From Macrostomum lignano (lineage: Eukaryota): a stretch of DNA of 64,000 bases. This document shows positions 10,845-63,551 of this stretch, piece after piece. The DNA lies in the NCBI GenBank assembly GCA_002269645.1, contig NIVC01000221.1:186001-250000 (forward strand), in the 5' to 3' direction. The translations under genes and the position numbers were made by a program. Below the pieces are notes generated by a model. The model did not search any database, was not told the origin of the DNA, and was given only the letters and a program-made list of their open reading frames with translations. How positions within the stretch are numbered: position 1 is the stretch's first letter; each line of letters begins with the position of its first letter.

Positions 10845-11033
10845 ATGCGCTCAGAACAGTCAATAATTGCACTGGTCACGGCCTGCATTTTGTTGGCATG
10901 CAGCGTCGCTGGCAGATTGATCCGAATTTCCTACATTGGCTGCTATCATGATGGAAATACCGAACGAGACTTTGATGAGTTCAAAAAAGTTAGCAAGCTT
11001 GTTAGATATTTGCGTCTTATATTTCCGTTTTAA
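10845..11033 (+). pseudogene. Truncated secreted WSC-domain gene (signal peptide + first WSC strand only)
   Basis: MRSEQSIIALVTACILLACSVAGRLIRISYIGCYHDGNTERDF matches the start of the 62833 copy (AGRVIEFSYVGCF). The remaining WSC cysteines are absent. Confidence 0.65.
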
Positions 11034-12272
11034 TCCAACGCTTAATCTTTGTGGGGAGGAGTGTGTTGACTTGGCTGGGTTGATTTCAGTGTTTATTACT
11101 TTATTCAGTGTTTGAGGGTGGTGTTTTTACCTGTTTCGCTGTGTGCGCCTTTCTAAAATGTCTTGATGTACGCTCCTAATCATGTACGTTCTTCATTCTG
11201 GCCACTAATTGTCCTCCATCCCTAAGACTCATCCTCATCCAGCTCAACATGTACAACATAAATCGCCGTCGTTTGCCCCGTATCAAGCGTATATCGTTCT
11301 ACAATCGAAAGTGAAGTCTTTACAGTTATAATATGGCTAGTAGCAATCTAATTTTTCAAAGTTTATGGAAGAAATATTTCGAAGTGGAACTATTTTTTGT
11401 AGATTATGCTGAACAAACAAAATTAAACATCGAATTGCATCTGTAACATATCCTAACTGACAGCTAAAAATCTTTGCAATCTTTGCATTCTAGCTGTTAG
11501 TTCCTCGATATGAAGCTGATGGCTATCAAATAATTACAAATTCTTCATCAACTCAAGTTTGACTGACGAGCAAAGCTTGAGGTCCAAATCTCTACAAGCA
11601 TTGCTGTTGAACATGTCAATTAAACGAAAGCCAATCATCTTATTTAAACAAGATAAGAGGATGAAATTGATCAACTGATGTGCAAGCGTTTAAGCCCAGC
11701 AGCCATGAAGAAAACCACAGAATTATAACTTATTTGCTCACCCAAGCATTATTTAGCCCGGCTCTCTTAAACAGTCTCTTGAGTTGTTTACAGTCGGTTT
11801 GAATTAACCAATCACACCCATGGAATCACACCAATCACACTCTATTATCACACCCCATTAGCAAAGGAGACGAACAGCAGGCAGGCAAATGTCTATGACC
11901 GAAGCAGCGCGAGAGGTCGGGAAAGCGACCCCGTGTAAACGATAAGTTTATTTGGCAAAAAAAACAAGATTAAAAGAATAAAAGGAGTTTTGAAAAATTT
12001 GAACTGCAAAGTCAGAGCGAACGACGTGGCACAGAGGGCGGCGCACAGATAAATAAGCGGGTGAGCAAAACATCCGCCCCAAGGAGGGGTGGAGAGGACA
12101 GTGCACAAACAAAGGAGCCCTAAGAGAAATGGAGGCATTAATCCTAAAAAAACTCTTGCCGGAGATTAGCCGGATATTTCTCTTCTTTCTAATCAAAAGT
12201 AGACGATCTCTAATGCCCATGAAGATGAAATCTTAGGCCAATGGATTCACGACATTTTTGGGCGATTCTTCC

Positions 12273-12305
12273 ATTGGCTTCTTCCAGCAAATATATTGCT
12301 TAAAT
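12273..12305 (+). promoter_or_regulatory. Conserved proximal block (inverted CCAAT + TATA-like) shared by WSC-PAN paralogs 1-4
   Basis: cattggcttcttcca(gc/ta)aaatatattg occurs ~70-100 bp upstream of the ATG near 12273, 19002, 22486 and 54447. Function is inferred from position and conservation only. Confidence 0.45.
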
Positions 12306-12372
12306 TTGTTACCTGAATCAGAAGAAGCGTCTCAGAAACCGCGGTTCGGCCGCTCTCTGGGATTTTTTCCCA

Positions 12373-13226
12373 ATGCTGAAACTCTGCGCTTTGCTGCTCT
12401 GTTGGGCAGCCGCTGTTGCGGTGCCGCCTCAACCGTTGGAGTTTCGCCACCTCGGCTGCTACGTGGATGGCGCTGATGGCAACCGAGATCTTGTAGGACT
12501 GCAGGGGGTCAAAACGTTCGGACAGTTTAAGACTCACCCTCATTCCATAGCATTCGTTTACTACTTCGCCAAGATGACACTACAACTGTGCAGCCAGATG
12601 TGCTCTTACGGCCGATTTCGCTACTTTGGGGTTCAGTCTGCGGCCTACTGCTGCTGCAGCTCGGCCTACGGATCGCACGGCATCGCACCGGCTGGCGACT
12701 GCAGCTCAGCTTGCAGCGGAAACTCGTCTCAGATTTGCGGTGGAGTCTCGAGAAACTCTATCTACGAACTGACTTACTCGCCAAGTGAGCATTCTGGATT
12801 AACGCAGCACGTACGAGCTAGAGGCGTAAAGAGAGTCTCACTGAGCCAGACGACTTAAAGACCCAGTGTTCTGAGGTCATTCTTGAATGTAGTTCGAACT
12901 GGGCCATTTTGCCAGCAATAGTATAATAATGACCAATCAAAATACTTAAGTCAAAATTATTTTCTACCAACCCTTCTGCAGTCGGTCCGGTGATGCCGAA
13001 ACTGCCCGTGACGTCTTTGCCGAACATCACAGCCTCCGAGAGCTCCGTCACTCACCGCAGCATCGCAGCCAGCAGTGCCGTTGAATGCGCCGCCATCTGC
13101 TACAGCAGCCCGGACTGTCAGGGCTGCGCCTTCGTGCCTTCGAGCCGCATGTGCCGCCTGCTGAGATTCGCCGCTGTGCCCGCTGAGGTGGCCAGCGAGG
13201 CTGAGGAGGTCTGGATGAAGCAGTGA
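12373..13226 (+). CDS. Secreted WSC + PAN/apple-like domain protein, paralog 1 (exons 12373-12784, 12982-13226; 218 aa)
   Basis: Signal peptide MLKLCALLLCWAAAVA. WSC motifs HLGCY.D, MTLQLCSQMC, YFGVQ, CCC, CSSACSGNSSQICGG. Phase-1 GT-AG intron. Exon 2 has the C-x3-C-x5-C...C-x-L PAN-type core. Confidence 0.88.
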
Positions 13227-14504
13227 GACTGAGTGGTTCTGGATGAAGCTGTGAGGCTGAGTGGGTCTGCATGAAGCTTTGAAGCTGAGTAGGTCTGGAT
13301 GAAGCTGTGAGGCTGAGTAGGTCTGGATGAAGCTTCGAATCTGTTCGGTGTAATATCAAGCATTGATAAAAATTCTTAGTAATAATCGTGAGAAACTTTT
13401 TAAAATACAAGAGAGCCATATTTTGGCCATGGTTTATATCTTAATATAATCTATCTATAATAACGAATGCAAATCAAAAGTTTTAAGACGTGCCTTTTGA
13501 CACGAATTCTTTTATTGCCTGTCAGTTGTCTAGACAGCTAAAACCGCTTATTAGTGGCGACTGTGCACTGATAAAACTTCAAAGGAAAAACAATAGCTTC
13601 TTTTAATTGCGTTGAACATGTATTTTTGGAAAATCGGTCTTGACTGGTATTGCAATTGACAATATTTGTGAGCTGACTAGTGGTTGCATTCAAGGAAAGC
13701 TTTCTCTGACATTGTTAAGAGATCCAATCACTGTTTTAGCGTTGAAAATCGTGAAATTTCATATCTCCGTAGTGTATTTTTCCGGTGAAACCTGCCTTTA
13801 AAACTATTTCTGAACGAAAAGCTTTATAAATATCGATAGAGCAAAAAGAAAGGCACAAGATATCAAAGCATGAACACTGGATCTGCCTCCTATCAAAAGC
13901 AATAACAATTTTTGTGCTGAAAAAATTAAAACCTCCTATCTCTGTAGTGTATTTTTCGGCGAAAAGTTGCTTTCAAAACATTTACCACAGATTTCGAGTG
14001 TTGCGTCCTATATATTTGATCCTTGAGTAGTCCTTGGTTGCATTGCAGACGGTGCTTGCAAAAAATAGTTTAGGCAAACACGCGGTTAAGCTACTCAGCA
14101 CGCTTGCCAGAAGATGTGTGGCCAACGGTCCTGTCCGATATTTCGTCCAAAACGTTTTGCGCTGATTTGCTGCGAGTTCTCTATTGAGTCAGATTTTTCA
14201 CAGGACCGTCTTTGGCGTCATTGTGCGAACTGATTATTTCAATGATGAATAAGTGTCCTGCCAGCTGCAGCCTGTTCACCACCAGCTTCTTCCTTAATTC
14301 CATGTTCTCCGATAATTTCAGCGTCAAGGCTCACCCAATCCGCCTCAACGCCTCATGCACACTTCTGACGATATTTGGGAATTTTATGCAAAATTCTGTG
14401 TTGAAAAGCCTGTTGGATTCCACAGGATTGTCTCAGTTAAAAGTTCTTGTAGCTTGATTTCTACAATTGAGTCTCTCAATCCAGCTTGGTTAAGCTCTCT
14501 TTTC

Positions 14505-15659: not shown

Positions 15660-18600
15660 TCTGGGACCAACTCAGCTAGTGGATTGTGGCGCTGGAGTCG
15701 GCCTGTTGGGTGGAGCTCTGGCCCGTCTTCAAGAACCATGTTGCAATCGAGTCTGATGCATGTGGAAGAGGTGGGGCAGCGGTGCTTCGAAAGTGGTCCA
15801 TGTCAGTTGGGACTGGTGCTACCTCAGTTGGAGCCAGGACGCAGTCAGAGTGTTCGCTGATCTGCTCATCAACTACGGCGCAAGGCAAAGTGCCTCCAAC
15901 GGAAAGCTGGCAAGAGCAAGGACCCAGCTGAGCTGGGCGCTTATCAAGACGCGATTTGTGACTTTAAGCGTGAAACCAGGAAATCCAAGTCCGATCGACT
16001 AGTGGTGCCAATACTGCGCCGAGTTTGAAGGCACCCGCCCTACTTCACGCGTGATCAAGGCTCTCAACCTCGACAAAAAGTCAAAGCTCTTAGTCATTAA
16101 AAGACCCAATGGCCGGCTCGCGGAGAACCCCGAGGAATCCCTGGAAATCATGCTCACAGGCTCTTTCCCACGTGCCGCGCAGCAGCTAGGTCCCCCCCGG
16201 ACCACTCTCCGGGTGGACAGATCCTGGCTTCGACCATCATTACTAGAGAGACGACGGCTCGCGTCGCAAAATCCTATTCTCTCCTTTCAAGTCACCGGGA
16301 CCTGACAACATTTATCCTGCCTTCCTCCATGAGGCAGTTAAAAATGACATGTTTCTTGGTCTCCTCTGCAACCTCTTCAAGGCCAGCATTACCCTCGGGG
16401 ACGTGCCAAAAGCCTGGCAAGAGGCAACCATAGTCTTCATACTCAAACCAGGGAAGGGAGACTATCATTCTGCCAAAGCTTACCGCCCCATCAGTCTTTC
16501 TTCCTCAAACTTCCTCAAACGGCTGGTGCTCTGGCGTCTCCTCCTCGTGGAGCTGAGGAACTCTCCGCTGTCCCCCAATCAATACGCCTTTCGTCCTGGA
16601 CACTCCATCGAAGGTGCGCTGCACGCCATTGTCGACAAGTTGAAACGCGCCGTGCTTGGCAGTGGATACACGCTGTCGCTTTTCCTCGACATTGAAGATG
16701 CTTTGAATAATGTGCTCTTTGAAGCCTTTAGCCCTGGAATCCCGGGGCACGCACGAGCACCTTACCCGCTGGATCATGTACATGGTCTCCCATCGTACTG
16801 CCACCTCGCACCTTCGGGACACTCCCGCTCTGTGGAGGTCCAGAAAGGCAGACCGCAAGATGGAGTCCTCAACCCGATTCTCTGTAACTTGGTCATGAAC
16901 GAGCTGCTTTGTAGCCCGCATCCGGACCCAGTTCAGAAGGTCGGCTATGCGGACGATGTTACTGCCACTGTCGCTGGACCATTACCCACGGTCCTCAGAG
17001 ACCTTCTCCAAGCCGTCATCCATAGTGCCGAGCGCTGGCACACAGCTGCGGCCTCAGGTTCCTTGAGTCTAAAACTGTGGCTAGCATGTTCACCAGCCGC
17101 CGAAACTGGAGGATAGAACCGCTCTCCCTCTATGGCAACCCCGTTGCCATGGAGAAACAAACCAGATGTCTGGGCGTCCCCCTCGACCAGGTTTGGTTTG
17201 GTTGAAGAGGTGTCCAATTTAAAGCCCGCAAAGCTTTCGAGAGCTTCCGAAAGATACGCAGAGCTTTCGGCGCTACCCGAGGCCTCTGGTGAATTTACAA
17301 TGCCATCTCCTTCGCCGGCTTCATATGGAACAGCGCCGTAGAGGTGAAAGGGGTTCTCGATGCTCTTAACAGGGTGCATGGCCACACTTGTCTAGCTATC
17401 ATGAGTGCCTCTATACCCTTTGCTTTCATGAACTCCTTCCTGGACATTCCCCACTTGACCTCTTTGTCAGAGGGGAGGCAGTGAAGACCACCAGCAGTCT
17501 GCTTGACGCGGGTGTCCAAATCCAGAAGCAGTTTGTCTTCAAAAAGCGGAACTTTCGGCCGCACGGCGACCTCAGACTGCGAGACCTGGAAGCAGCGGGA
17601 AGCCTGTTGACCCTCTCGGACGGAATCCGATCCACGCTCTTCTCTCCGAAAAAATTCAAAACCAGCATTCCAATAGGAACAACTGGAAACCCCGAGAAAT
17701 CCATTTCTTCACTGACGGGTCCCAAATCAACTCCGCCTCTGACTACGACTACTGCATCGTGTCTGGAAGGAGCTTCACTGACGGGTCCCAAATCAACTCC
17801 GCCTCTGACTACGACTACTTCATCGTGTTTGGAAGGAGAACCGTGTTGGCCATCTTCCAGCACACCGGCGCCTGCTCCACCGATTTCCAGAACGAAATTC
17901 TCGCCATCAGCTTCTGCGCCATAGAGCTGTATAATCAGCGCGTCTGGGGGAAGGAGATTACCCTCCACTCGGCAGTCAAGCGGCGATTCACGCCCTTGAG
18001 CGCACCACCACCTGCTCGCGTACAGTCCTTGACTGCATCGGGCAGCTCAACCGCTTAGGCGCCTCCAACAAGGTGTTCCTAATGTGGATCCCAGGAACTC
18101 AGGCCAACCCGGCAACGAGTTGGCCGATCGCCTGGCCAAGGCTGGCTCGACCGGTTCTTTTACTGGTCCCCTGATCGTGGCCCCCACCCCCATTGCCGTT
18201 GTCACCACTCGGATCAACCAGTAGGTGGCTTCTAAGCACAGGGAGAGGTGGGCTAACGCCCCCGACTGCCGGCAATCCCGCGCGGCTGCCCCATGTCCTT
18301 CCTCCGCCCTGCGCAGGGCCCTGCTTGGACTCAACCGCGTGCAGGGACATCAGGACGGTGACCTTGGCTCTATCAGGTCATGGGTGTTTTGTCAGGCATC
18401 GTTACCTCCATGGAAAAATCCGTAGCGCGGAATGCCCATTTGGCCTATCCAGTGTCGAGAATGCGGAGCAACTCATCTGTGAATGCCCCGCCTTTGCTCA
18501 GGACAGGCTCACCTACCTCGGCCCAAACCCGGACTTCTCCAACGTTTCCAGGCCCGAGAATCTCTGCCAGCTCGTCCGCTACCTAATGCTACCGGGCGAG

Positions 18601-18770
18601 CGACCATCCACCTCCGGGACTCTCCGAAGGAGGACCGCGCTGCGGAAACCGGCACCACCGGCTCTCCCTGCGCGACACCGCAGCACCATGCAGCTGCCTG
18701 TGGTCGCCAGCGGCAATGACGCCTCGCTGCATTAAGATGCACGGAGCCCCTTTTCAGCTAAGTCAAGTAA
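15660..18770 (+). mobile_element. Decayed, 5'-truncated non-LTR retrotransposon (LOA/R1-like ORF2 with RT, RNase H and C-terminal Cys/His motif)
   Basis: Fragments across frameshifts: SFKSPGPDNIYPAFLHE, WQEATIVFILKPGK..YRPISL, FLDIE, GRPQDGVLNP, YADD, RNase H FTDGS and W.PG...GNELADRLAK, LSGHG...CPFG...LICECPAF. Ends in a taagtcaagtaagtaa tail. The 5' boundary is approximate. Confidence 0.85.
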
Positions 18771-19099: not shown

Positions 19100-19937
19100 A
19101 TGCTGAAACTCTGCGCTTTGCTGCTCTGCTGGGCGGCCGGTTCCGGACGCTTCGCCGCTGCTTCTGTGCCGCCTCAACCGTTGGGGTTTCGCCACCTCGG
19201 CTGCTACGTGGACGGCGCTGATGACAACCGAGATCTTGTAGGACTGGAGGGGGTTAAAAAGTTCGGACAGTTTGAGACTCACTCTGTTCACTCAGCGTTT
19301 GTTTATGATGACTCAAAGATGACATTGGAAATATGCAGCCAGATGTGCTCTTACGGTCGATTTCGCTACTTTGGAGTTCAGCTCCACAGCTTCTGCTGCT
19401 GCGGCTCGGCCTACGGATCGCACGGCATCGCACCGGCTGGCAACTGCAGCTCAGATTGCAGCGGAAACTCGTCTCAGATTTGCGGTGGAGCTTCAAGAAA
19501 TTCTATCTATGAACTGACTTACTCACCAAGTAAGCGTTCCGGATTAACGCAGCACGTAAAGCGTAAACACAGCCTAATTTAGCAAAAGACGACTAAAAAC
19601 GCTCTGTGTTCCAAAGTCGTCATTTGAATTTATTTTACTATATTTATAAGTGATATTTAAGACAATAATATTTTCTACCAACCCTTCTGCAGTCGATCCG
19701 GTGATGCCGAAACTGCCCGTGACGTCTCTGCCGAACATCACAGCCTCCGAGAGCTCCGTCACTCACCGCAGCATCGCAGCCAGCAGTTCCGTTGAATGCG
19801 CCATCATCTGCTACAGCAGCCCGGACTGTCAGGGCTGCGCCTTCGTGCCTTCGAGCCGCATGTGCCGCCTGCTGAGATTCGCCGCTGTGCCCGCTGATGT
19901 GGCCAGGGAGGCTGAGGAGGTCTGGATGAAGCAGTGA
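19100..19937 (+). CDS. Secreted WSC + PAN/apple-like domain protein, paralog 2 (exons 19100-19529, 19693-19937; 224 aa)
   Basis: Same architecture and phase-1 intron as paralog 1 (CCAA|gtaagc ... ctgcag|TC). Confidence 0.88.
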
Positions 19938-20675
19938 GACTGTGTGGTTCTGGATGAGACTGCGAGTATGTTTGATCTAATCTCAAACACTGATAACAAT
20001 TCTGAGTAATAATCGTGATGAACTGAAAAAATACACGAGAATCAGATTTTGGCTACTGTCTATATCATATTCCAATATCTATAAAGCTATCTATAATAAA
20101 CTGGAAATTTATAGAAAATGTTTCATTTATCTTCGGTTTCTTTCTCTACTAACCTATCTTTTCTCTGCATTTGTTGTCGGAATGCAATCCTGCTCGCGTT
20201 CAAAAGCGCTGGCACACATTGACATTCCGTTTGCCTTGCGGCCCGCGAAATCATGGGACAACAGCGAACACTGCTGCTGCATTTCATGAAAAACTACTTA
20301 GCTTGATGAACCTGTGAGCGGAACTTAAACAGGACACATACTTGCCTCATTTGCAACTAGTAAGTTTTGAAGCTGAGATATTGACAATTCAGCGCTAAAA
20401 AACTGAGAATTTCCTACAGAAAGAAGATAGCTTTGGATTCAGCTATTCAACTCCAGATGCCAGGTGCACAGCACAGCTGGTAGCTACGAGCTAGTTCCCA
20501 CATATTCAACTTCGGTTGCTCCCACGAAGAAAAAAAACCTACTTCTTCTCAATGTCTAGACTTGAAGTATCTGAAAATCCTTTTTTTGAAAAGCTGCCAA
20601 GCCAATTGTCTGGCTGTCAGTATAAAGACTTTGACACCTGATTGCTATGAAGAAGTGGAAACACACCTGAAAGCA

Positions 20676-20999
20676 ATGCAAGCGCTTATAATTTTAGTTG
20701 ACTTCTTGTCTGTATGGGTGCTGCTGGCTTTCGAGTCGCCTCACTTCCGATAGGTTCGCTACATCGGATGCTTCACTGACGGCAGAGAGAACTGCGATCG
20801 AGACTTTCAAGGACTGGAAGACGTAACGGCGTTTGACCGGTACACAGTTGACCGCAAGTACAGCGCCTTCGTCAAGAGTAGGAAAATGACACTGCAGAAG
20901 TGCAGCCCGATCTGCTCATACGGTCGGTTCGGCTACTTTGGTGTCTAAACAGCCCTGTGTTGCTGCTGCGGATCTGCGTACGGGTCTTGCAAGCATTAA
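20676..20999 (+). pseudogene. WSC-domain pseudogene (divergent subfamily)
   Basis: MQALIILV...PHFR*VRYIGCFTDG...MTLQKCSPICSYGRFGYFGV*TALCCCCGSAYG. Two in-frame stops, truncated, no PAN exon seen. Confidence 0.8.
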
Positions 21000-22588
21000 A
21001 ATGAGGCTAAACTCACAAAACTTGTCAGTTTTATTGATGGTTGGCTTTGGCTGTTAGGTATTGTAAGAAGTTAAACTTTTATTGATCTCGTAAAATCACA
21101 ATCAATATTCCCGACAGAGGGCCTGTTTTTTAAGGTAAAATTTTCGACTTTTGTATACTTGTTGATTGACTGTCTAATAATGATGAAGAGGTGTCCCTAC
21201 CAGCTGCCTCCTCTTCACCACCAGCCTCTTCCTCGATTCCATGTTCTCTTATAATTTCAGTGTCAGGGCTCATCCAATCCGCCTCACTGCTTCCTGTACA
21301 CTCCTGACGACTTCTGTGGGACTTCTGTCAAATTGTGAGTGAACTAGCCTGTTGGATCGGAGTGGCTAAATATTCTAACGATCCTGTTTCTTTTGAAGTT
21401 CAATATGAAAAGCGGTTTCGGCCATAGACTGTCGGAAAACCTTTTCCACATCAGACAATTTCGCCCATACTAAGAGAGTTTTCTTGTAATTTCTTCATCC
21501 CTTTGTAATTCTTCCTTAGGAGGCTTTTCACGGAAATGCACACCTGTTTCTACCTTCTCTAAGCTTTTGTATCCTTGCAATTTGTTTTATCGATTTCGTT
21601 GACAAAACGCTTATTTGGAGATAAGCTCAACAGTTTTTTTGTTTTCTCAGCACCGAATTTTCTGCTGATACAACAGAGCAGCTTTCAAAGACATCTGTTA
21701 GGCTTCTCAAGATCAATGAGCAGAGGTAAAAAGTTCGAGAGAGAAAGACGAGAAACGATAGTGAACGTCAATATTGCGGATCAATGGGTAAAATGAACAA
21801 GAAGCGCATGGATTGGAACGATTCAGTGGCTTCCTCGCTGAGTTTTAAGCTTATTTCGAGCCAGGAGGCTCTGTGAATTTCGCGGCTGGGTAAATGCGGC
21901 GAGCATGCGAAAACTACCGAATAGATAAATATCTACTTCAGCGCAACAGGTAGTTCCCGCATATTTGACTTCGGTTGCTTCCTTTGATGTAGAACAAAAA
22001 ATCCCATTTCTTGGTTAAGGACATAAATTTTTCCGAGTGTTTGTTAGAATTGTTTCAAAAGTAAATCAGGATGAAGCTAGGAGACTGAACTGATCTACAC
22101 AAAAAGTTTTCGAACCAATTTTTAATAGAAATAGTCCATTTTTTACCTCTAGTAGTAACTTTTTGCTGTTTGTCAGCCGACTTCGAATTTTGTTTTTGCT
22201 CAATTAAACGTGCAGTTTATCCTCTGCTTTTTATTCCGATAGTTCTAAACACGCAGCTCACTCTCCTTCGTTGTTTCAGTTAATTAGAATTATTCTTAGA
22301 AAACCACTCTTTCTATTCATATTCATTCACAGCTCAATTTAACTCCCAGTGCAAAAATGCTCTTTGAACACAGTGTCAGAGATTTGCCTGATATTCTCTT
22401 CTTGCTACTCATCAGTAGGCCATCTCTCACGCACATCAACGTGAAACCTCAGCCAATTCTTGAACAGCATTGGCGGGCGATTCCTCATTGGCTTCTTCCA
22501 ATAAATATATTGCTTAAATTTCTTACCTGAATCAGAAGAAGCGTCTCAGAAACTGCGCAGTTCGGCCACTCTCTGGACGTTTTTCCCC

Positions 22589-23426
22589 ATGCTGAAACTC
22601 TGCGCTTTGCTGCTCTGCTGGGCAGCCGGTTCCGGACGCTGCGCCGCTGCTTCCGTGCCACCTCAACCGTTGGAGTTTCGCCACCTCGGCTGCTACTTGG
22701 ACGGCGCTAGTGGCAACCGAGATCTTGCAGGACTGGAGGGAGTCAAAAAGTTCGGACAGTTCGAGACTCATCCCTTTGTCCCAGGATTTGTTTTCGATGA
22801 CGCCAAGCTGACACTGCAACTGTGCAGCCAGATGTGCTCTTACGGCCGATTTCGCTACTTTGGGGTTCAGTCTAAAGACTTCTGCTGCTGCGGCTCGGCC
22901 TACGGATCGCACGGCATCGCACCGGCTGGCGACTGCAGCTTCGCTTGCAGCGGAAACTCGTCTCAGATTTGCGGTGGAGACTCGAGAAACTCCATCTACG
23001 AATTGACTTACTCACCAAGTAAGCGTTCCGGATTAACGCAGATCGTTAAAACTCAGGTTAATTTAGCCAAGTACGACCTAAAAACGCCGCGTTCTTCATT
23101 CGTACTTTAAATTAGTTAATTGAGCGATTAAATTATAAATATTCATTTTCAAAACAATTTTTGCAACCAACCCTTCTGCAGTCGATCCAATGATGCCGAA
23201 GCTGCCCGTGACGTCTCTGCCGAACATCACAGCCTCCGCGAGCTCCGTCACTCACCGCAGCATTGCAGCCAAGAGCGCCATCCAGTGCGCTGCCGCCTGC
23301 CAGCGAAGCCCGGACTGTCATGGCTGCGCCTTCGCGCCTTCGAGCCGCATGTGCCGCCTGCTGAGATTCGCCGCTGTTCCCGCTGAGGTGGCCAGCGAGG
23401 CTGAGTGGGTCTGGATGAAGCTGTGA
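22589..23426 (+). CDS. Secreted WSC + PAN/apple-like domain protein, paralog 3 (exons 22589-23018, 23182-23426; 224 aa)
   Basis: Intact signal peptide, WSC exon, phase-1 GT-AG intron and PAN exon. Confidence 0.88.
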
Positions 23427-23719
23427 GGCTGAGTGGATCTGGATGAAGCTGTGAGGCTGAGTGGGTCTGGATGAAGCTGTGAGGCTGAGTGGGTCTGGAT
23501 GAAGCTGTGAGGCTGAGTGGGTCTGGATGAAGCTGTGAGGCTGAGTGGGTCTGGATGAAGCTGTGAGGCTGAGTGGGTCTGGATGAAGCAGTGAGGCTGA
23601 GGGGGTCTGGATGAAGCTGTGAGGCTGAGTGGGTCTGGATGAAGCTGTGAGGCTGAGTGGGTCTGGATGAAGCTGTGAGGCGGAGTGGATCTGGATGAAG
23701 CTGTGATGCGGAGTGGGTC
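23397..23719. repeat. 28-bp VNTR GAGGCTGAGTGGGTCTGGATGAAGCTGT (~11.5 copies) starting in the last codons of paralog 3
   Basis: Clear 28-bp period. The first unit encodes EAEWVWMKL and the stop TGA spans the unit 1/2 junction. Confidence 0.95.
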
Positions 23720-25260: not shown

Positions 25261-25562
25261 TGAGGCGGCGTGTTGGTTTGCAGGGTCAGACTCTTGAGTT
25301 ATTGATCTACGAGTATATATTTTATTGAACCAATGAGCCAATGCCTTCTTACACCCGAAGTGTTCAGATGTACGTATTCACTCTAAGCACTTTATTTATT
25401 TTATGCCTTCTGTGCGCGCACTGCACCAACCACCCCAATATTATCACTATCGTGTTTGCTATATATCGTTAGTTTTCTCTCGCTTTGAAATCGTGAAATA
25501 CAACAGCATTTTGACCATGCATAATTAAGCTAGACTTGTTTCATTCAATCGACGACACGTCA
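25261..25562 (+). repeat. 5' LTR (302 bp)
   Basis: Direct repeat of 29292-29593 with TG...CA ends. Confidence 0.97.
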
Positions 25563-29294: not shown

Positions 29295-29593
29295 GGCGGC
29301 GTGTTGGTTTGCAGGGTCAGACTCTTGAGTTATTGATCTACGAGTATATATTTTATTGAACCAATGAGCCAATGCCTTCTTACACCCGAAGTGTTCAGAT
29401 GTACGTATTCACTCTAAGCACTTTATTTATTTTATGCCTTCTGTGCGCGCACTGCACCAACCACCCCAATATTATCACTATCGTGTTTGCTATATATCGT
29501 TAGTTTTCTCTCGCTTTGAAATCGTGAAATACAACAGCATTTTGACCATGCATAATTAAGCTAGACTTGTTTCATTCAATCGACGACACGTCA
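29292..29593 (+). repeat. 3' LTR (302 bp)
   Basis: Direct repeat of 25261-25562, followed by the TSD CCAAC. Confidence 0.97.
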
Positions 29594-38863: not shown

Positions 38864-38869
38864 GAGATA

Positions 38870-53960: not shown

Positions 53961-54033
53961 TGAGTAGGTCCGGATGAAGCTCTGAGGCTGAGTGGGTCTG
54001 GATGAAGCTGTGAGGCTGAGTGGGTATAGATGA
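53961..54033. repeat. Orphan 28-bp WSC-PAN 3'-end repeat (~2.5 units)
   Basis: Same unit as the 23397 array, but with no PAN exon upstream. Confidence 0.85.
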
Positions 54034-54547: not shown

Positions 54548-55383
54548 ATGCTGAAACTCTGCGCTCTGCTGCTCTGCTGGGCGGCCGGTTCCGGACGCTG
54601 CGCCGCTGCTGCGGAGCCGCCTCAACCGTTGGAGTTTCGCCACCTCGGCTGCTACGTGGATGGCGCTGTTGGCTACCGAGATCTTGTAGGACTGGAGGGA
54701 GTCAAAAAGTTCGGACAGTTTGAGACTCACCCTTCTAACCCAGCATTCGGTTTCGACTTCACCAAGATGACACTGCAACTGTGCAGCCAGATGTGCTCTT
54801 ACGGCCGATTTCGCTACTTTGGGGTTCAGTCTGCGGCCTTCTGCTGCTGCGGCTCGGCCTACGGATCGCACGGCACCGCGCCGGCTAGCGACTGCAGCAG
54901 AGCTTGCAGTGGAGCCCTGTCTCAGATTTGCGGTGGAGAGTCGAGAAATTCGATCTACGAGTTGACTTATTCACCAAGTAAGCGTTGCGAATTAAAGCAG
55001 CTCGTAGAAGTGTAAAGATAGTCTCACTTAGCCAGACGACGTAAAACGCTGCAGATGTTCTAAAGTCGTCCTTAAATGTAGTTCGGACTGGGCCATTTCA
55101 AATATCAAAACAATTTTTTGTAACCAACCCTTCTGCAGTCGATCCAATGATGCCGAAACTGCCCGTGACGTCTCTGCCGAACATCACAGCCTCCGCGAGC
55201 TCAGTCACCCACAGCAGCGTCTCTGCCAAGAGTGCCATCCAGTGCGCTGCCGCCTGCCAGCGAAGCCCGGACTGTCAGGGCTGCGCCTTCGCGCCTTCGA
55301 GCCGCATGTGCCACCTGCTGAGATTCGCCGCTGTGCCCGCTGAGGTGGCCAGCGAGGCTGATTGGGTCTGGATGAAGCAGTGA
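54548..55383 (+). CDS. Secreted WSC + PAN/apple-like domain protein, paralog 4 (exons 54548-54977, 55139-55383; 224 aa)
   Basis: Intact. Same phase-1 intron and motifs as paralogs 1-3. Confidence 0.88.
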
Positions 55384-56287
55384 GGCTGAGTGGGTCTGGA
55401 TGAAGCTGTGAGGCTGAGTGGGTCTGGATGAAGCTGTGAGGCTGAGTGGGTCTGGTTGGAGCTGCGAGTCTGTTCGATTTAATGGCAAACACTGATAAGA
55501 GTTCTGAATGATAATCCTGACGTACTTTTAAAAACGAAAATGATTAATGTATTGGTTCTGTTTCATGTCTTATTATTTATAAAGCTATCTAGAATAACAA
55601 ATGCTATTAAAAGTTTTAAGAGCTTTAAATCTTTTATTTTCTCTTAATTGTCCATTGGCAGAACTGTTGTGTACGGTATATAAACATATGTTGTGTTATG
55701 TGTATTTATAAGCTTCAAATTCTTGGATATTAGTTTACCGTCTATTAAACTAAAACTCCATGGCTAGACTACATGTATGTTTTATTCTACGCTTTGGGCA
55801 TATTTCACGTCTTAGGCTATCATTTATAAAGCTATCTAGAATGACAATTTCAAATCCGAGTTTCGAAGTGTCAAGGTTAAAAAGTTTAAAGTTTTTTCTT
55901 TTTGCATTGTTTAGCTACTGTCAAAATTAATGTTTATGGTAAAAACTTTAAAATTTCTGGATACATTACTACTTTACTGTTGTACCGTTACGAGTTGTAA
56001 GAACTCCATGACTAGTTGACAGTTGGAAAATCATTTGCAGCCGTACGGCATTTTAACGTTAAATTTTTAAACAAAATTTCAATTCGAGCTAAACGAAGCT
56101 CAATTTGGACAATCTAGTGGAGTGCGGTTTTTGCGGCAATTCAGTTGAAACGAATTCTCTTTCTTACAGGCTAAGTTTTCCGAATTGGAAAATGTTTTCC
56201 GACAGTCTATGGCCGAAACCGCTTTTGAGTGGCGACTGCGCTCTGATTAAAGTTTCAAGGAAACAGATCAGAGTCACTTTCAGGAGC

Positions 56288-56319: not shown

Positions 56320-56369
<50 letters not shown>

Positions 56370-56455
56370 GAGAGAAAGAGAGAGAGAGAGGAGAGAGAGA
56401 GAGACAGAGGGGGGGGGGAGACAGAGAGGGGAGAGAAAGAGAGAGAGAGAGAGAG
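56288..56455. repeat. (GA)n microsatellite, expanded relative to the paralogous site at 34168-34195
   Basis: Long interrupted AG dinucleotide run followed by the same gtttgggtgcc flank. Confidence 0.9.
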
Positions 56456-57319
56456 GTTTGGGTGCCGATCGATGAAAGCGAGCGCTAGTCAGCATGAGAG
56501 GCTCAACTACCATTGTGATTCTCACTACACCACCTCTCCTGAGTATCCTTGGCGCTATCCACATTGCAGAGTAGACAGTAGAGTGGCAGATTCTTCACTG
56601 AGCATAAAACAGGAAAATTTCTAAAGTCTATTACGAGCTAATTCTAGGCGTATGCAAAAATCGAGATGAAGCTCAAGCCGTCACGGGTGAATTCAACAGC
56701 AGGAACGCAAAAAAAGCCGCTGGAAATAACAGCGCTGCATGGCGCTCCCAGCTTTTTCTAAAAAACCCACGCATCGTAGAAAAGCTTCAATTTTTTCTCA
56801 GACTGCGAAATTCTTCCCAGATGAGTCAGGTACACTAGTGTTAATGAGAAAAGACAATTTAAACTTACTGTAGTTTTACTACTAAAAGTAGTTCATCCGG
56901 TGTCCCACCGGTTGCGCATTCAACAAGAAAATACAAGCCGCCAATACACTCTGCTTTAAACTATACGACGTAGAAGACACATCGATTCATTAAGCAATCA
57001 CCGATCACTGAGCACCGAGAAACAACACTTAAAATGATTTACCAAACAGGCATCATCACTTTAGCGACGTCTGCACCCTGCCTGCGTCGCTGGCAGTGTT
57101 GGTTGAATAACTTCTACTACTTTGTTTGAACGCGTTCCGTAATTGGTAGATATTTCATTATATAGTACTTTAGCGCGAGGGACATCCAAACAGAGTGAAT
57201 GCCTCCACCATATACTAAAAACGGTCTGTCGGTATCTAGGTAGGTAGGAATATATGTGACTGATTAGTGAAAAATGGCTCAACAAATTTTCTTCGGATTT
57301 AATCGAATAACTTGAATCG

Positions 57320-57660
57320 CACTTGATAAGTCAAGGATTATTGCACTTGATAAGCCAAGGATTATTGCATTTGATAAGCCAAGGATTATTGCATTTGATA
57401 AGCCAAGGATTATTGCACTTAATAAGCCAAGGATTGTTGCACTTGATAAGCCAAAGATTATTGCATTTGATAAGCCAAGGATTATTGCACTTGATAAGCC
57501 AAGGATTATTGCACTTGATAAGCCAAGGATTATTGCACTTGATAAGCCAAGGATTATTGCATTTGATAAGCCAAGGATTATTGCATTTGATAAGCCAAGG
57601 ATTATTGCACTTGATAAGCCAAGGATTATTGCACTTGATAAGCCAAAGATTGTTGCATTT
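57320..57660. repeat. 24-bp minisatellite, ~14 copies (paralog of the 35086 array)
   Basis: Same unit and the same flanks. Confidence 0.95.
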
Positions 57661-57747
57661 GACTTCAGATGCCACATGTTGAACGACAATGACTATCTAC
57701 TGGCGCTGTAGCACAGCTGGCAGTTTCTTAAAATTCTACTTCGATTG

Positions 57748-57965
57748 AAGCACCGCTCGCTTCCGATACACGCCTCAGTTCCGAGAAGTCGCTACACTGG
57801 ACGCCTCGCTGACAGCAGGGAGAACAGCGGTCGAGACCTGCAAGGACTCGAAAGTGTCACGGCGTTTGGCCGGTACACAGTTGACCGCCTTCGTCAAGAG
57901 CACGAAAATGGCACTGCAGAGGTGTAGCGGTTTCATGCTCGTAAGGTCGGTTCTGCTTTTTTGGT
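57748..57965 (+). pseudogene. Degenerate WSC exon fragment (duplicate of 35660-35875)
   Basis: Nearly identical to the 35660 fragment, with the same lesions. Confidence 0.7.
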
Positions 57966-59482
57966 GTTCAGGCGGTCGACGAGGGAGAATGTGCGGCCCG
58001 TGCAGTGACATCTGCAATGGCGCTAACTGGATCATTTCCATCTTTAAAATCACCATTTGACAGGTAAAAATCCTCAATTTTGAACGGAGCTGAGTTTAAT
58101 TCAAACCAAGATATACTTGAATTGAGACATTTCAGTGGAATGCGATTCTTTGAGGAAATCCAATCAATTCAAACAAACTCCCTTTCTATTGGCTGAATTG
58201 TCTGAATTGGAAAATCTGTTCCGACAGTCTATGGCCAAAATCGCTTTTAAGAGGCCTCGGCAGCTCACTAATGCGAACTGCTTTTTAGACAATGAGCGGG
58301 ACGTGTGTCCTGCCAACTGTCTCTCCAAGCCATCCTCTTCACCAGCCTCTTCCTCGTTTTCATTTTCTCCGACAATCTCAGTGTCAAGACAAATCCAGTC
58401 CGCCTCATCTTCATGCGCACTCATGACGATGGCTGCTAGATCTCTATCCAATTCGATGAGTTAAACAGGCGGTTGGAGTCGCACAATACGAGTATTCCGT
58501 CGATTCTGCATCTTTTGAACTTCAATTCAGCGAGCTGTCGCCCCTGAAAAGCGGTTGGCAATAAATTTTCCAATTCAGAAAATGTAGTCTATAAAAACGG
58601 AGTAACTTATTTGAATTGAACTTCTGTAAGAATCAAAATGCACTGGATAGGAACTCGATTGAAGTTGTTGTAGTTTGAATTGAACTCGATTTTGTTTAAA
58701 ATTGAGGGTAAAATGATGTACTACTCTTATAGTATGGGTATTATTTTTTCTATTCATACAAATAATCCATGTGTTTCAGTGATTCACGACTAACATTTAT
58801 TCAGAGCAAATGGCCTTTTTATTGATACGGCCTAATGATGCCTAATGACGCATCGCATGATTTGCTTTTAAATCGCGGATCGGCAAACCCCGCCCGCGCA
58901 GCCTCTCTATTCGGCCCTCCGGTCCTTTAAAACTTCACAACGGCAATCCGGCGACTATGTGGCTGGTCAACTCTTTATCCCCTCTTCTTTCCCTTCTCTC
59001 CCCTCCTCTTTTCTCCTCTTCTCCTCTTTCCCCTTTCTCTCCCCTCTGTCGGCCTCTCACATTTTCCCTCTCTCCGCTTCTTTCGCCTCTTTCCCTCCTC
59101 TCCCGTCTTTCCCCTCCTCTCGTCTTTCCCCTCTTCACTACCTTCTCTTTCTTATCTCTTCTGTCATCCTATCTCTCGACTCTTATCTCTTGTCTCATCT
59201 CTCATTTTCCATTCCTCTCCTCTTCCAGTTATTCAACAATAACTGACTGGTGAATTTTCTCATAAAAAGCCCAGACGAAAACGTTTTCACGGCTCAAACG
59301 TATTGTCCCCACTCCCTTGTAATTCTAGTTGCTAGGGCGAATGTCATCTTTTGGCCCGACATCCTACTCATGCTGCTTGACGAGCGCACAGCCCTTGAGT
59401 TCAACTCTTTTCAGAGCTGCTGTTGAACTTGTAAATCAAACACGTTCTACCCCGAGAATCTGCGATTGCAATGCCCCTAAAC

Positions 59483-59630
59483 CTCTGTAACACCCTGATT
59501 TCAGAGTGGCGTGTCTAAAGACACCAACACTCTGTAACACCCTGATTTCCGAGTGGCGTGTCTAAAGACACCAACACTCTGTAACACCCCGAGTTGAGAG
59601 TGGCGTGTCTAACAGACACCAACACCCTGG
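59483..59630. repeat. 47-bp tandem repeat, 3 copies
   Basis: ctctgtaacaccctgatttcagagtggcgtgtctaaagacaccaaca starts at 59483, 59530 and 59577. The unit contains a gtgtc-taaa-gacac hairpin. Confidence 0.9.
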
Positions 59631-60607
59631 ACACACCCCCGACTTGAGCGTATCTTGGCATCAACACAATGCCATCATAAGCAACACAGGAATATTCTGC
59701 CAGGTGGTACACTTGAATAATTCGAGGCTCAAATCCGACAACTCACAAGCGTCTGAGCGAGGAGCTGCATCGACTGCTCAGCGAGGCGGAATCCATACGA
59801 ACTGTTGAACTTCCAGAACAAGCAAGAACTTCAGACCGGGTTTGAAGGTTCTGCTTTCTCTGCGACTCTCACGCATGATTTTCAACCCTAATAGCCAGCA
59901 TATTTTGCAACACTACACTGCACACGAATGGTAGTATAGATTAAAATACACTTACATTTATATTAATTATAGTTGGTTGTACACCTCGGGTGGCTTTAAA
60001 AATGAGTGTTAATAATTATTTTCTTCACTGATATTCCTTGTGGCGATCTTTAAATAAGTAATTCCTTGTTGCGACTGTATTCTGGGTTCGAATGTATTTC
60101 TGAAAGACTATCCAAACTTGCATCGATGAAAATTATCCAAACTCAAGATCATTTTTTCGGCAAAAAATATAAAATCCAATATAATTTTTGCAGAAAAATT
60201 GCTCAATAAATTTTAAAAGCACAAATTTGCCTTATTTCGAATGCATTAGTCAAAAAAGTAAGTTGTCTTGAAATTTGTGCTTTAAAACTGAGAATTTCCT
60301 ATCTCACAAATGCATGTTGCAGTGAAAACCGCGGCCTCTACAGAAATCTCTACGCTTGGCGGGTGCAGCGTCCTTAACTCTATTTTAGTGGTCCATGAGG
60401 GCAACACGGGCTTACAAGAGAGCCAAATGCAGCTGATTTCTCACTGGCTGAGGCCCTAGAAACCAGACAGACAGTCTCGAGTCGAGTAAACTTCAGAAGC
60501 TGTTGCAATCAAAACATAAGCCATACAGCCAGTGTTCACAGCACAGAGCAGGCATATTCTGAAAAGTCAAAACTTCAAACACTGACCGCAAAGACCAGAG
60601 GCATCAA

Positions 60608-61532
60608 ATGTTTTCAAAAAGCTTTTCTGTCGGTTACTTGCTGATGTGGGCGGCGTTCGGAAGCTGCTTGACTTCGGTGCCGCCTCATCCGATGGCATTC
60701 CGCTACATCGGCTGCTTCGTGGACAAAAAGGACCCCGACATGACAGGCCTCGTTGGAGTCGCTACGCTCGGTCCGTATTCGACCTTTTCAGAAAAACCAT
60801 TTCTTGTACAAGACTCTTTAATGACGCTGCAGATGTGCAGCCAGATCTGCGCTTATGGGAGATTTCGATACTTCGGTACGAGGTACGGTGGATACTGCTG
60901 CTGCGGCAACAGCTACAGCTCGTTCGGTCCCGCCCCGGCTAGTGACTGCTCGCATCATTGCAAGGGAAACTCGTCTCAAATCTGCGGTGGAAACATGAGG
61001 AACTCCGTCTACGAAAATATTTATAATCACGGTGAGAGGGAATTTTTCTGAAGCGAATGTTGTTTTGTTGCCAAAACGGGGCACAATAAGTTACAACATC
61101 GTTATACCGTCAAAAACTGTCAAACGAAGGTGGATACCAGTGACAACTTAACTAATTCTAAGATATTATTTTCTAAATATATTATTTCTAGTTTTCAGGC
61201 AATTTTTCCCTAAATTCAGTTTTAATTCAACTTTTGTAGCTGGCCAAACAATGACCAAGCTGCCAGCTTCTGCCATGCCGAGCATCTCAGCGTCACTGAG
61301 CTCCATCACTCACAGCAGCGTCTCTGCCAAGAGCGCCGTCCAGTGCGCTGCCGCCTGCCAGCGAAGCCCGGACTGTCAGGGCTGCGCCTTCGTGCCTTCG
61401 AGCCGCATGTGCCGCCTGCTGAGATTCACCGCTGTGACCGCTGAGGTGGCCAGCGAGACTGAGTGGGTCTGGATGAAGCTGTGGGGCGGAGTGGGTCTGG
61501 ATGAAGCTGTGAGGCGGAGTGGGTCTGGATGA
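60608..61532 (+). CDS. Secreted WSC + PAN/apple-like domain protein, divergent paralog 5 (exons 60608-61031, 61240-61532)
   Basis: Signal peptide, RYIGCFVD, MTLQMCSQIC, CCCG, CSHHCKGNSSQICGG. Phase-1 intron CAC G|gtgaga ... tgtag|CT. The PAN exon reads on into the 28-bp repeat. Confidence 0.85.
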
Positions 61533-61677
61533 AGCTGTGAGGCTGAGTGGGTCTGGATGAAACTGTGAGGCTGAGTGGGTCTGGATGAAGCTGTGAGGCG
61601 GAGTGGGTCTGGATGAAGCTATGAGGCTGAGTGGGTCTGGATGAAGCTGTGAGGCTGAGTGGGTCTGGATGATGCTG
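61455..61677. repeat. 28-bp VNTR (~8 copies) at the 3' end of paralog 5
   Basis: Same unit as the 23397 array. Confidence 0.93.
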
Positions 61678-62832
61678 CAAGGCTAAAGCTGGTCTGCACT
61701 GGCAAACACTGAGAAGAATCTGAGAAAAAATCGTAGCAGGCTTTTAAAAATACACGAGAATCATATTTTGGCAATTCTTTGAGTGTTTATGAGTGTTTCT
61801 AATATCAACTGCAAATCTGAAACTTTAAGCTAGGGTCTCCTTATTGATGGAGTCGACAAATTGAGAGCCGTTTTGAGACACGTGGATCAGGACATCGAAC
61901 GCCAATCAGGCCAGATCCAGTGATCGTGCAGCTACGAGCGTAGTTGAAGAGAGCCATGGACCAGATTTGTTAGTTGATGACAGCCCGATGTCGATAGCAT
62001 CTCAGGAGTTTGTTCAAAAGCAGTCTGGTGAAAGAGAGAGAATGAAAAGCGAATTGTTTAGGTTCCGATGGAGGGAAGCGAGGTCTTGTCAGCATTAGAG
62101 GCTCAAGTACAAATTTTGTGGTTCTCAATAAACTACACCTCCTGAGTCAACCTTAGCGTTATCCAAATCGCAGAGTAGACAGACCGACAGCTGGAAAAAA
62201 TATCAGATAACATTCATAGTAAAAAGAATGAATGTCCAGATATCTGAGTTTGCAACCATTGAAGTTCAGGAAACTGGGAGGCTAGACATCTGACTGGTGA
62301 CAGTGAATTTACGGAAAGCGGAAACACTCTCATCTGTAGCAGATTTGCTGCTGGGAAGAAAAACTGGAGCATCTCCCTGATGCCTCTTGTGAGCGCATAC
62401 AAAAAACGGAGAAGAAATTTTAGCCGTCTTCCGGCAAATTCACCTGCAGAAATGTGGAAACAGGTTGGAAAAACAAAGCTGTGAGACACATGCTGCCAGC
62501 TTCTGTAAAAACTCGCTGCTAAAGAAGCAATTCAAAAATGCTTTTGCAAGCAGGTGATCGCCTCAGTCTCTCCCTGCCTCTTCTTGCCCAGCGTAATTGA
62601 CGATGATTCAGTTCTTTTATGTTGGCTGTTTGAAAGCTCGTTAATCGATATTTCAAACACAGTTTGTACTTAAAGTAGCATATCAGTTATCTACACAGAT
62701 CTTAGCTCAAAGCGCAGTGATACATGTAGATCTGCAAATAACCTATCAGATTAGCCCACTGAAAAACTATATAAAGCTGTGCAAAGTCGTCTAGTGAGCA
62801 GGAGCAAGAAGCCCAGGTATACAATTTTAAAC

Positions 62833-63551
62833 ATGTTCTACAGACATTCAGTCGTTCTGGTCGCTGTATGCACCTTCTTTGTCCTCGCCGCTGGCAGGGT
62901 GATAGAGTTTTCTTACGTTGGCTGCTTTAAAGACGAAGGAAGCAACAGAGCCTTAAACGGATTCGTGGATGTCACAAGCGTTGGCCGATACGGGAACACA
63001 GTACATTCGGCCATCCGTAATAGCGGGATGACCCACGAAATGTGCGGCAGCATTTGCTCCTTGGGCGGATTCCTAGCTGTTTTTCGGGGTGCAGCACCTA
63101 CTGCTACTGCGGCTCATCCTATGGCTCAGTCGGATCAGTCGCTGACAGCCTGTGCAGCACTGTGAGCTCTGGAAACTCCAGTCAAATGTGTGGAGGCAGT
63201 TACAAAAACTCAGTTTTCGCTTTGACCTACCCGAGTGAGTGTTCATACTAAAAGTGTAAACTGTTAGCGACCAATGAATCAACGTGGGCCTATTCCCTAA
63301 ATTATTTCATTTCGCAATTTCAGATAGCAAATGTTTTCAACAGACTGCCAGGCAAACCCTCACAGTGACTGCCTCGCGACAGATCCACTGGACCCGCCCT
63401 ACAGGTTACCTGTGTGATGCTGTGCGAGGCCTCAGCTGAGTGCCAGGCTGTGATTTTCTCTGGCCAGCAGCGCCTGTGCCACCTGCTGAGGTTCGCCTAC
63501 CCGCCTGCACACCTGAGCAGCACCGATGGGGTGTACTATGTTCGTGGCTGA
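62833..63551 (+). pseudogene. Class-2 WSC + PAN gene, frameshifted (exon 1 62833-63234, exon 2 about 63325-63551)
   Basis: Signal peptide + SYVGCFKD..MTHEMCGSICSLGGF, frameshift near 63085, then YCYCGSSYG..QMCGG..LTYP|gtgagt. Exon 2 TCVMLCEASAECQAVIFSGQQRLCHLL also needs a frameshift. Confidence 0.8.

Follow-up and report, generated by a model that had tools for sequence, protein, structure and literature searches.

WSC and PAN/apple domains are structurally related: the WSC domain itself adopts the PAN/apple fold and has two of its four disulfides in common with PAN cores, and in animals the WSC domain of Kremen binds a protein, Dkk, and not a glycan (PMC9024836). Within the flatworm Macrostomum lignano, secreted WSC proteins form a prominent group among the prostate-limited candidates for seminal-fluid proteins, a context that was absent from the initial annotation of the locus described here. 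An in situ screen identified 76 prostate-limited M. lignano transcripts, and in Table S1 of that work at least 13 prostate-limited transcripts name WSC, with 7 more matching 'fungistatic metabolite' proteins (PMC5977470). A prostate secretion epitope depends on Mlig-pro5 (RNA815_80.4), a protein with two WSC domains (PMC4490696), whilst Mlig-pro46 and 'several other' seminal-fluid candidates resemble WSCD2 (PMC6953679). Seminal-fluid candidate transcripts also map to multi-copy genes with a common numeric ID prefix, such as Mlig024181.g1-g10 (PMC6953679), which probably denotes tandem copies. Here we describe a tandem family of small, predicted secreted proteins that each combine one WSC domain with one PAN core, encoded in a 64,000-nt stretch of M. 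lignano contig NIVC01000221.1 (GCA_002269645.1; hereafter the window, to which all coordinates refer).

Our overall reading, to which we assign a rough probability of 0.55, is that the window carries genes of a family, so far seen only in M. lignano, of small secreted disulfide-rich WSC and PAN-core binders, that the family evolves as a mosaic, and that reproductive gland secretion is the leading candidate for its biological context.

Gene structure, domain content and distribution of the family

Intact loci were located by tblastn with the exons of one member (g3) and by translation of the loci named in the initial annotation, yielding five strong exon pairs, all on the plus strand and designated g1 to g5 (Table 1). 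At each locus the paired open reading frames (ORFs) are joined by an intron with a GT donor and a polypyrimidine-AG acceptor, the donor GT lying immediately 3' of codons for TYSP(A), or for HG in g5. Exon 1 measures 412, 430, 430, 430 and 424 nt in g1 to g5, respectively; each length is 3n+1, and all five introns are therefore phase 1. The five two-exon plus-strand genes proposed initially, with WSC and PAN in separate exons either side of a phase-1 intron, were thus recovered in full. An intron at the same profile position was also found in a gene of a distant subfamily (P0073; loci L002 and L003), indicating that the ancestor of the family already had one domain in each exon. Two exact identities to existing M. 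lignano protein models span the splice junction, one of 128 aa between g1 and UniProt model A0A1I8GBL5 (P0005) and one of 53 aa between g3 and model P0011. These public models of g1 and g3 are frame-broken or chimeric, P0011 being named 'Autophagy-related protein 13', whilst the frames in the window are clean and full-length, so that public annotation of this family must be considered unreliable.

Against Pfam, all five products matched WSC (PF01822) at 41.6-52.7 bits (cut-off 27.8 bits), and g1, g3, g4 and g5 matched PAN_1 (PF00024) at 24.5-29.7 bits, with g2 at 20.9 falling slightly under the cut-off of 21.4 bits. Topology was assessed with a 19-residue Kyte-Doolittle hydropathy scan, a heuristic rather than a dedicated signal-peptide predictor. 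The sole hydrophobic stretch of each product was N-terminal, hydropathy after residue 30 reached a maximum of no more than 1.02, and the C-terminal tail was not hydrophobic. A hydrophobic segment confined to the N-terminus indicates a signal peptide without a transmembrane segment or glycosylphosphatidylinositol (GPI) signal, and the sensible reading is that the products are secreted, as predicted at the outset together with the WSC and PAN-like domains.

The mature proteins comprise ~195 aa with 14 cysteines, nine encoded by the WSC exon and five by the PAN exon. The two domains are separated by a Ser/Thr-rich linker of ~35 residues, which carries an N-glycosylation sequon in g1-g4 and none in g5. 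Cysteine patterns were read from a 13-sequence alignment, in which the eight conserved WSC cysteines were present and the motifs GC..., LCSQMC, FC(C)CG, DCSxxC and ICGG were invariant; g1-g5 have one extra WSC cysteine, forming a CCC motif. The PAN core cysteines (C179-x3-C183-x5-C189 ... C201-x-L) were also conserved, and one extra cysteine (C192 in g3) marks the PAN module of the clade comprising g1-g5 and P0007-P0010. It is possible that the extra cysteines form an inter-domain or inter-molecular disulfide.

Profile comparison with the Protein Data Bank (PDB) matched the WSC half to Kremen (E 1.7e-12) and yeast Wsc1 (E 5e-8), and the PAN half, at marginal significance, to the HGF N-domain (3e-3), MIC4 (5e-3) and SML-2 (8e-3). 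An AlphaFold2 (AF2) model, made on a close M. lignano homologue with the family alignment and not on a window product itself, gave predicted local distance difference test (pLDDT) values of ~60-70 for the WSC domain and 83-89 for model residues ~151-180 in the PAN region, which is laid out as a strand, a helix and two strands. The WSC fold consists of a PAN-like core around which the long L5 loop is wrapped, and Foldseek matched the modelled WSC domain to Wsc1 (7PZ2) and Kremen (5FWS) with a probability of 1.00 and weak E values (7e-3 to 4e-2), and the C-terminal domain to HGF NK1, plasminogen, Sarcocystis SML-2 and Toxoplasma MIC4 apple-5 with probabilities of 0.9-1.0; the PAN fold matches (HGF N-domain, SML-2 and MIC4) extended over ~50 aligned columns at a root-mean-square deviation of ~3 A. 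For both modules we regard the Foldseek result as supportive rather than decisive. The initial annotation had set a PAN match or fold as the test of its assignment of exon 2, and Pfam, the profile comparison with PDB and the predicted fold all matched PAN. An apple domain of the factor XI/prekallikrein type was considered for exon 2 and rejected, as there is no flanking cysteine pair for the outer disulfide and the module measures ~50 residues; it is accordingly a PAN core and not an apple domain. Given the fold of the WSC domain itself, the family proteins represent two PAN-class modules in tandem.

A word-indexed search returned M. lignano proteins only, except for one partial WSC match covering 28 % of the query. 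The profile search of 1.84 billion representative proteins gave 6,807 matches, most of them multi-WSC proteins; matches to the whole profile were either proteins of ~176-235 aa or long fused models with 5-7 WSC and PAN units, and a PAN-only hidden Markov model (HMM) selected the same whole-profile proteins. Every full-length match looked up for its source was from M. lignano (P0013 and P0131 carry UniParc IDs only), and an indexed search with a diverse alignment identified 22 M. lignano proteins at ~70-100 % coverage, most of them above 80 %. Fungal and metagenomic matches covered the WSC half only. The WSC and PAN architecture is an apparent large expansion, with no fewer than 12 clusters when grouped at 50 % identity, and has so far been seen only in M. 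lignano; it is not the widespread, slowly evolving family that the initial annotation had named as a refuting outcome. Literature searches on WSC proteins in combination with flatworms yielded two papers on other WSC proteins and nothing on a minimal WSC and PAN architecture, in line with the initial annotation, which did not recognize it as a named family.

Three database models, P0013 (2673 aa), P0015 (1074 aa) and P0174 (1656 aa), contain 3-7 consecutive WSC and PAN units, the latter two being M. lignano proteins. Most likely, annotation has merged adjacent tandem genes in these models, with true polyproteins as the alternative, and merged models of this kind would indicate further arrays of the family elsewhere in the genome.

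Diverged WSC exons and near-identical 3' modules

The genes are mosaics: their WSC exons, introns and putative promoters diverge, whilst the last ~155 coding nt and an adjoining minisatellite are near-identical between subfamilies. The minisatellite, which the initial annotation did not contain, has a 28-bp unit (GAGGCTGAGTGGGTCTGGATGAAGCTGT) that starts in the last codons of the gene, straddles the stop and continues into the 3' untranslated region (3'UTR). Unit 1 encodes the last nine residues (EAEWVWMKL), and the junction between units (CTGT followed by GA) supplies TGA, so that the stop codon is created by the minisatellite. The stop of g5 is changed from TGA to TGG, as a result of which the frame runs 16 codons into the minisatellite and gains 16 residues.

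At the nucleotide level, g3 and g5 are 63 % identical over exon 1 and 43 % over the intron; within exon 2 their identity rises from 68 % over nt 1-90 to 95 % over nt 91-245. Synonymous divergence (dS) to g5 is 0.85-1.16 in the WSC exon versus 0.00-0.07 in the PAN core (Fisher p ~7e-7 to 1e-6), and for g1 versus g2 it is 0.257 in exon 1 and 0.018 in exon 2 (Fisher p 7e-4). The 3' modules are of two types, g1/g2 and g3/g4/g5, which contradict the exon-1 tree and cut across it as expected for exchange. Both the tract and the repeat were also found at the paralog P0007 on another scaffold of GCA_002269645.1 (L001:10721-11219; blastn identity 88-94 %), where the 155 nt of 3' coding sequence are 83 % identical to both g3 and g5. 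The minisatellite was absent from the P0073 subfamily.

These data indicate that the 3' homogeneity probably arose through gene conversion or ectopic exchange, with the minisatellite as its seed, in addition to the birth-and-death of whole genes. Under such a mechanism the minisatellite would promote ectopic recombination or gene conversion, and the PAN 3' module would be homogenized as a consequence. Tandem multigene families in which a single exon evolves in a concerted manner are a known general class; we know of no named precedent for a conversion tract on a stop-overlapping minisatellite, no literature search having been aimed at one.

The near-identity might instead reflect purifying selection on the nucleotide sequence, for example on an element for mRNA localization, stability or translation or on a small-RNA target, and we consider this unlikely as a full explanation. 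Conservation of the tract at 83-94 % even in P0007 on its different scaffold, and the presence of the repeat in the 3'UTR of every member of this clade, would fit such constraint, and it counts against the conversion reading that constraint at the nucleotide level could account for part of the 3' homogeneity. The same repeat varies in copy number from 2 to 11.5, however, occurs once as an orphan without a gene and is dispensed with in the P0073 subfamily, whilst the discordance of the 3' module types with the exon-1 phylogeny also argues for exchange over constraint. An RNA structure was considered for the 3' tract or repeat and discarded, the tract being predicted to fold no better than shuffled sequence (z = +0.25). 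Long minus-strand ORFs over the repeats (e.g. 23248-23721) were likewise rejected as genes, since they are stop-free read-through of the 28-bp unit.

Selection was assessed from the nonsynonymous-to-synonymous ratio (dN/dS) by pairwise and sliding-window Nei-Gojobori analysis. Pairwise whole-gene dN/dS was 0.41-0.61, and positive selection received no support from either form of the analysis: no window was convincingly above 1, the few 15-codon windows that exceeded it resting on very few substitutions. Variable loops delimited post hoc had a pN/pS of 0.86, compared with 0.28 for the remainder. Set against the general expectation for typical genes, constraint on the family looks relaxed. The initial description of the cluster as rapidly turning over is borne out only in part, with WSC-exon dS of 0.14-0.33 among g1-g4 and ~1 to g5 alongside dN/dS of 0.4-0.6.

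Upstream of the genes, g1-g4 have a conserved region (Table 1) with the motifs CCAAT at ~-135, ATTGG at ~-100 and AAATATAT at ~-84, as well as a shared TATA-like motif. The g4 copy deviates, with a distal CCAAT at -217 and only 61 % identity to g3 over the upstream 200 nt, and the region upstream of g5 is unrelated to that of g1-g4. These shared motifs, as a putative promoter, are consistent with live, co-regulated genes.

Candidate function and biological context

The proteins would act extracellularly as non-enzymatic two-module binders. Variable WSC loops may contact a glycan or protein ligand, and the uniform PAN tail, with its clade-specific extra cysteine, may provide a constant second contact in the form of an anchor, a partner or an oligomerization surface. 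The term 'lectin', borrowed from fungal WSC and apicomplexan PAN precedents, is plausible but not assured because the Kremen WSC domain binds protein. By analogy with the prostate-limited WSC proteins of the same species, glandular reproductive secretion (prostate or seminal fluid) is the leading candidate context, albeit a tentative one, and we would rank it ahead of an immune or mucus lectin and of other secretions or extracellular matrix. A more elaborate scenario can be drawn, of a 'variable head, constant tail' repertoire in which WSC birth-and-death and minisatellite-driven PAN conversion across subfamilies and scaffolds would furnish seminal-fluid lectins for sexual conflict in a hermaphrodite, and we regard it as improbable.

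Several results weigh against our overall reading. On the side of context, the 18 primer pairs of RNAi-tested seminal-fluid candidates (36 primers, of the 76 transcripts) had no match in the window even with as many as 4 mismatches allowed; the family IDs (Mlig013640, Mlig005479, Mlig003588 and others) and the term 'WSC' were absent from the Brand 2020, Wiberg 2021 and 2026 Cells supplements; a full-text search for the family gene IDs gave no occurrence; and no expression, localization or binding datum could be linked to g1-g5 via published primers or gene IDs. With primers and IDs unmatched, the link to seminal fluid is one of analogy. Peptides encoded by the primers were also tried as a link to seminal-fluid transcripts and discarded, having matched one unrelated long model only. 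On the side of the proteins, exact full-length products of g1-g5 were not found in a 15-billion-protein collection; the PAN match is short, at ~45 of 76 model positions (within ~10-62), with g2 under the cut-off; the mean pLDDT of the AF2 model is 62, indicating moderate confidence; and every Foldseek match had E above 1e-3. The restriction to one lineage may reflect the small number of other macrostomorphan genomes in the libraries, and dN/dS of 0.4-0.6, with a loop value of 0.86, falls short of demonstrating that the WSC 'head' is under diversifying selection.

The alternative that survives best is that put forward in the initial annotation, an innate-immune or mucus lectin repertoire, by which an epidermal, gut or gland secretion would recognize microbial beta-glucans or other glycans; we consider it unlikely. 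Tandem, lineage-specific, pseudogene-rich arrays such as this one are typical of immune recognition families. Binding precedents exist for both modules, as the fungal WSC domains of SiWSC3 and ThCrd2 bind beta-glucan, according to work cited in PMC9024836, and apicomplexan microneme PAN/apple modules bind galactose (PDB 2yil/2yip, MIC4). The absence of detectable positive selection speaks against an immune repertoire, as do the prostate-limited localization of those M. lignano WSC proteins localized so far and the binding of protein rather than glycan by the Kremen WSC domain. A structural or matrix component of some other secretion (eggshell or cement, adhesive, rhabdite or pharyngeal gland) seems less likely still: M. 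lignano produces numerous tail-specific gland secretions (PMC4490696), and small, cysteine-rich, secreted proteins could cross-link through an odd or extra cysteine, but low-complexity or repetitive structural regions are missing from the products and both modules are classic binding folds. That the cluster is transcriptionally dead or decaying, its 'intact' ORFs being recent duplicates not yet disrupted, is highly improbable, for although relics outnumber live copies in a transposon-rich region and public protein sets lack the exact products, the putative promoter motifs are conserved, the splice junction recurs in older annotation models, and dS of 0.14-1.0, dN/dS of 0.4-0.6 and the retention of 14 cysteines in all five copies indicate that selection has acted since duplication.

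Decayed copies, genomic setting and comparison with described systems

Decayed copies were sought with a family HMM, constructed from window and database members and run on the six-frame translation of the whole window. All six plus-strand relics of the initial annotation were recovered, no other coding match was obtained beyond the five genes, and the minus strand contained no family match. Together with an orphan minisatellite that the earlier list did not include, and which is probably all that remains of the 3' end of a lost gene, the cluster holds about seven decayed copies. The estimate of at least three subfamilies also stands, as we distinguish g1-g4, g5, a dead 20676/35660/57748 subfamily and a dead 62833/42250 subfamily; the relic at 10845 probably belongs to the last of these, intact relatives of which occur at other genomic sites, e.g. 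P0070. The 62833 pseudogene has two exon-1 frameshifts near 63072-63095, one frameshift or stop in the exon-2 linker and one lost WSC cysteine. With at least three independent frame disruptions in addition to the lost cysteine, assembly error is an unlikely source of this pseudogene.

Table 1. Positions of intact genes, minisatellites, conserved tracts and relics of the family
Feature	Position	Strand	Details
g1	exon 1 12373-12784 (signal peptide and WSC); exon 2 12982-13226 (linker and PAN core)	+	218 aa
g2	exon 1 19100-19529; exon 2 19693-19937	+	224 aa
g3	exon 1 22589-23018; exon 2 23182-23426	+	224 aa
g4	exon 1 54548-54977; exon 2 55139-55383	+	224 aa
g5 (divergent subfamily)	exon 1 60608-61031; exon 2 61240-61532	+	238 aa
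Minisatellite of g1	13197-13334	+	4.9 copies
Minisatellite of g2	19908-19963	+	~2 units
Minisatellite of g3	23397-23719	+	11.5 copies
Minisatellite of g4	55354-55472	+	4.2 copies
Minisatellite of g5	61455-61684	+	8.2 copies
Homogenized exon-2 3' tract (PAN core and tail), shown for g3	23266-23426	+	95 % nt identity to g5
Conserved upstream region of g3, ~190 bp	22396-22588	+	common to g1, g2 and g4
Relic: signal peptide and first ~30 WSC-exon residues, nothing recognizable after	10845-11009	+	HMM 10854-11009, E 2.6e-6
Relic: signal peptide and first half of WSC, in-frame stops, no exon 2	20676-20987	+	HMM 20757-20945, E 2e-20
Relic: frame-shifted WSC fragment, 20676 type	35681-35892	+	HMM 35681-35803, E ~1e-4
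Relic: duplicate of the 35681 fragment, heavy frame decay in both	57769-57980	+	HMM 57769-57888, E ~1e-4
Relic: exon-2 (PAN) fragment, third subfamily, duplicate of 63399-63545	42242-42433	+	HMM E 5.6e-13
Two-exon pseudogene, third subfamily	62833-63548	+	HMM 62854-63239 and 63399-63545, E 1e-15 to 1e-17
Orphan 28-bp minisatellite, no adjoining coding relic	53961-54033	+	2.6 copies; beyond the relics listed initially

Self-comparison of the window revealed a segmental duplication of roughly 8 kb (34170-42865 versus 56431-64000; 86-96 % identity), which explains the paired relics (35681/57769 and 42242/63399). The g5 gene is present in the second copy only, the matching interval of the first (~40244-41408) being shorter, and this difference could be due either to loss from the first copy or to insertion into the second. 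A tandem array with pseudogenes in transposon-rich DNA is the birth-and-death pattern that had been proposed for the cluster.

Repeats and transposons are abundant in the window, the GC content of which is ~37-56 %. An apparently intact Ty3/gypsy-type long terminal repeat (LTR) retrotransposon occupies 25261-29593, with LTRs of 302 bp (25261-25562 and 29292-29593) that are 100 % identical and an ORF (25536-29294; 1252 aa) with protease, reverse transcriptase (RT), RNase H and integrase domains; it appears to have inserted into the cluster very recently. Fragments of LINE-like non-LTR RT lie between g1 and g2 (16349-18735) and just past the LTR element (30365-31543). On the minus strand we observed a 287-aa ORF with DUF3504 and a phage-integrase-type tyrosine recombinase (Crypton/DIRS-like; 37162-38025), located in the first duplication copy, and a 259-aa mariner/Tc1-like DDE transposase ORF (45265-46044). 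A plus-strand ORF at 2345-3109 matches the kinesin-type 'Microtub_bd' domain (59 bits) and probably belongs, as an exon, to an unrelated host gene that flanks the cluster. Directly upstream of the 35660 and 57748 relics are arrays of a 24-bp satellite (GCATTTGATAAGCCAAGGATTATT; 14-21 copies, 95 % matches) at 35061-35574 and 57319-57662. Further tandem arrays are located at 1-596 (11-bp, 54 copies), 1646-1979 (17-bp, 98 % matches), 9112-9978 (CT-rich, 16/112-bp), 39060-39597 (37-bp, 14.5 copies, 98 %) and 47264-47542 (24-bp, 11.6 copies, 99 %), the last of these within a 408-aa ORF (46995-48221) without a Pfam match.

The locus defines an uncharacterized, apparently Macrostomum-specific family built from two known binding modules, and supplies clean full-length gene models where public protein sets hold truncated or frame-broken ones. 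Should the family be among the prostate-limited WSC proteins, the cluster would offer a tractable system for the study of sexual selection in M. lignano, in which diverging WSC exons stand beside homogenized PAN exons as a natural experiment. A stop-creating minisatellite that marks a conversion tract is also a compact example of a repeat splitting a gene into a free and a concerted module. No long-standing question is opened by the family.

Among described systems, the Mlig-pro prostate WSC proteins come from the same species and are likewise small, secreted and multi-copy, with no close homologues outside the lineage, but those described so far either contain two WSC domains or have no reported PAN module. 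The best profile match to a solved structure was Kremen1/2 (PDB 5FWS/5FWW), an extracellular animal WSC domain with 8 cysteines and a CGG motif. Kremen is, however, a type I membrane receptor of Kringle-WSC-CUB architecture that binds Dickkopf, whereas the window family lacks Kringle, CUB and transmembrane segments and has a PAN core. Membership of the Kremen family was rejected, as Pfam finds WSC and PAN only and there is no hydrophobic segment past the signal peptide.

Fungal WSC proteins (Wsc1, PDB 7PZ2; SiWSC3) share the use of WSC as a carbohydrate- or wall-binding module. Fungal copper radical oxidases carry PAN as well as WSC as N-terminal accessory modules, not necessarily in one chain, and the sole PAN-bearing oxidase matched was that of C. 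graminicola (PDB 6RYV/6STX). The fungal modules are attached to an enzyme or a membrane sensor, whereas in the window family the modules stand alone, in the order WSC then PAN. PAN lectins and N-domains (HGF/plasminogen, T. gondii MIC4 and SML-2) resemble the exon 2 module in their C-x3-C ... C ... C-x-L core and in the predicted helix-on-sheet fold; the exon 2 module differs from PAN/apple lectins in its length of ~45-50 residues, in lacking the outer apple disulfide and hairpin insertions, and in its extra cysteine. The minimal WSC and PAN architecture, together with a minisatellite that spans the stop, is a hitherto undescribed combination of known parts. Like tandem families in which one exon evolves in concert, the locus has exons that, within a given gene pair, differ in how far they have diverged, a discordance tied to a recombinogenic repeat, and it differs from them in that the probable conversion tract is anchored on a minisatellite overlapping the stop codon.

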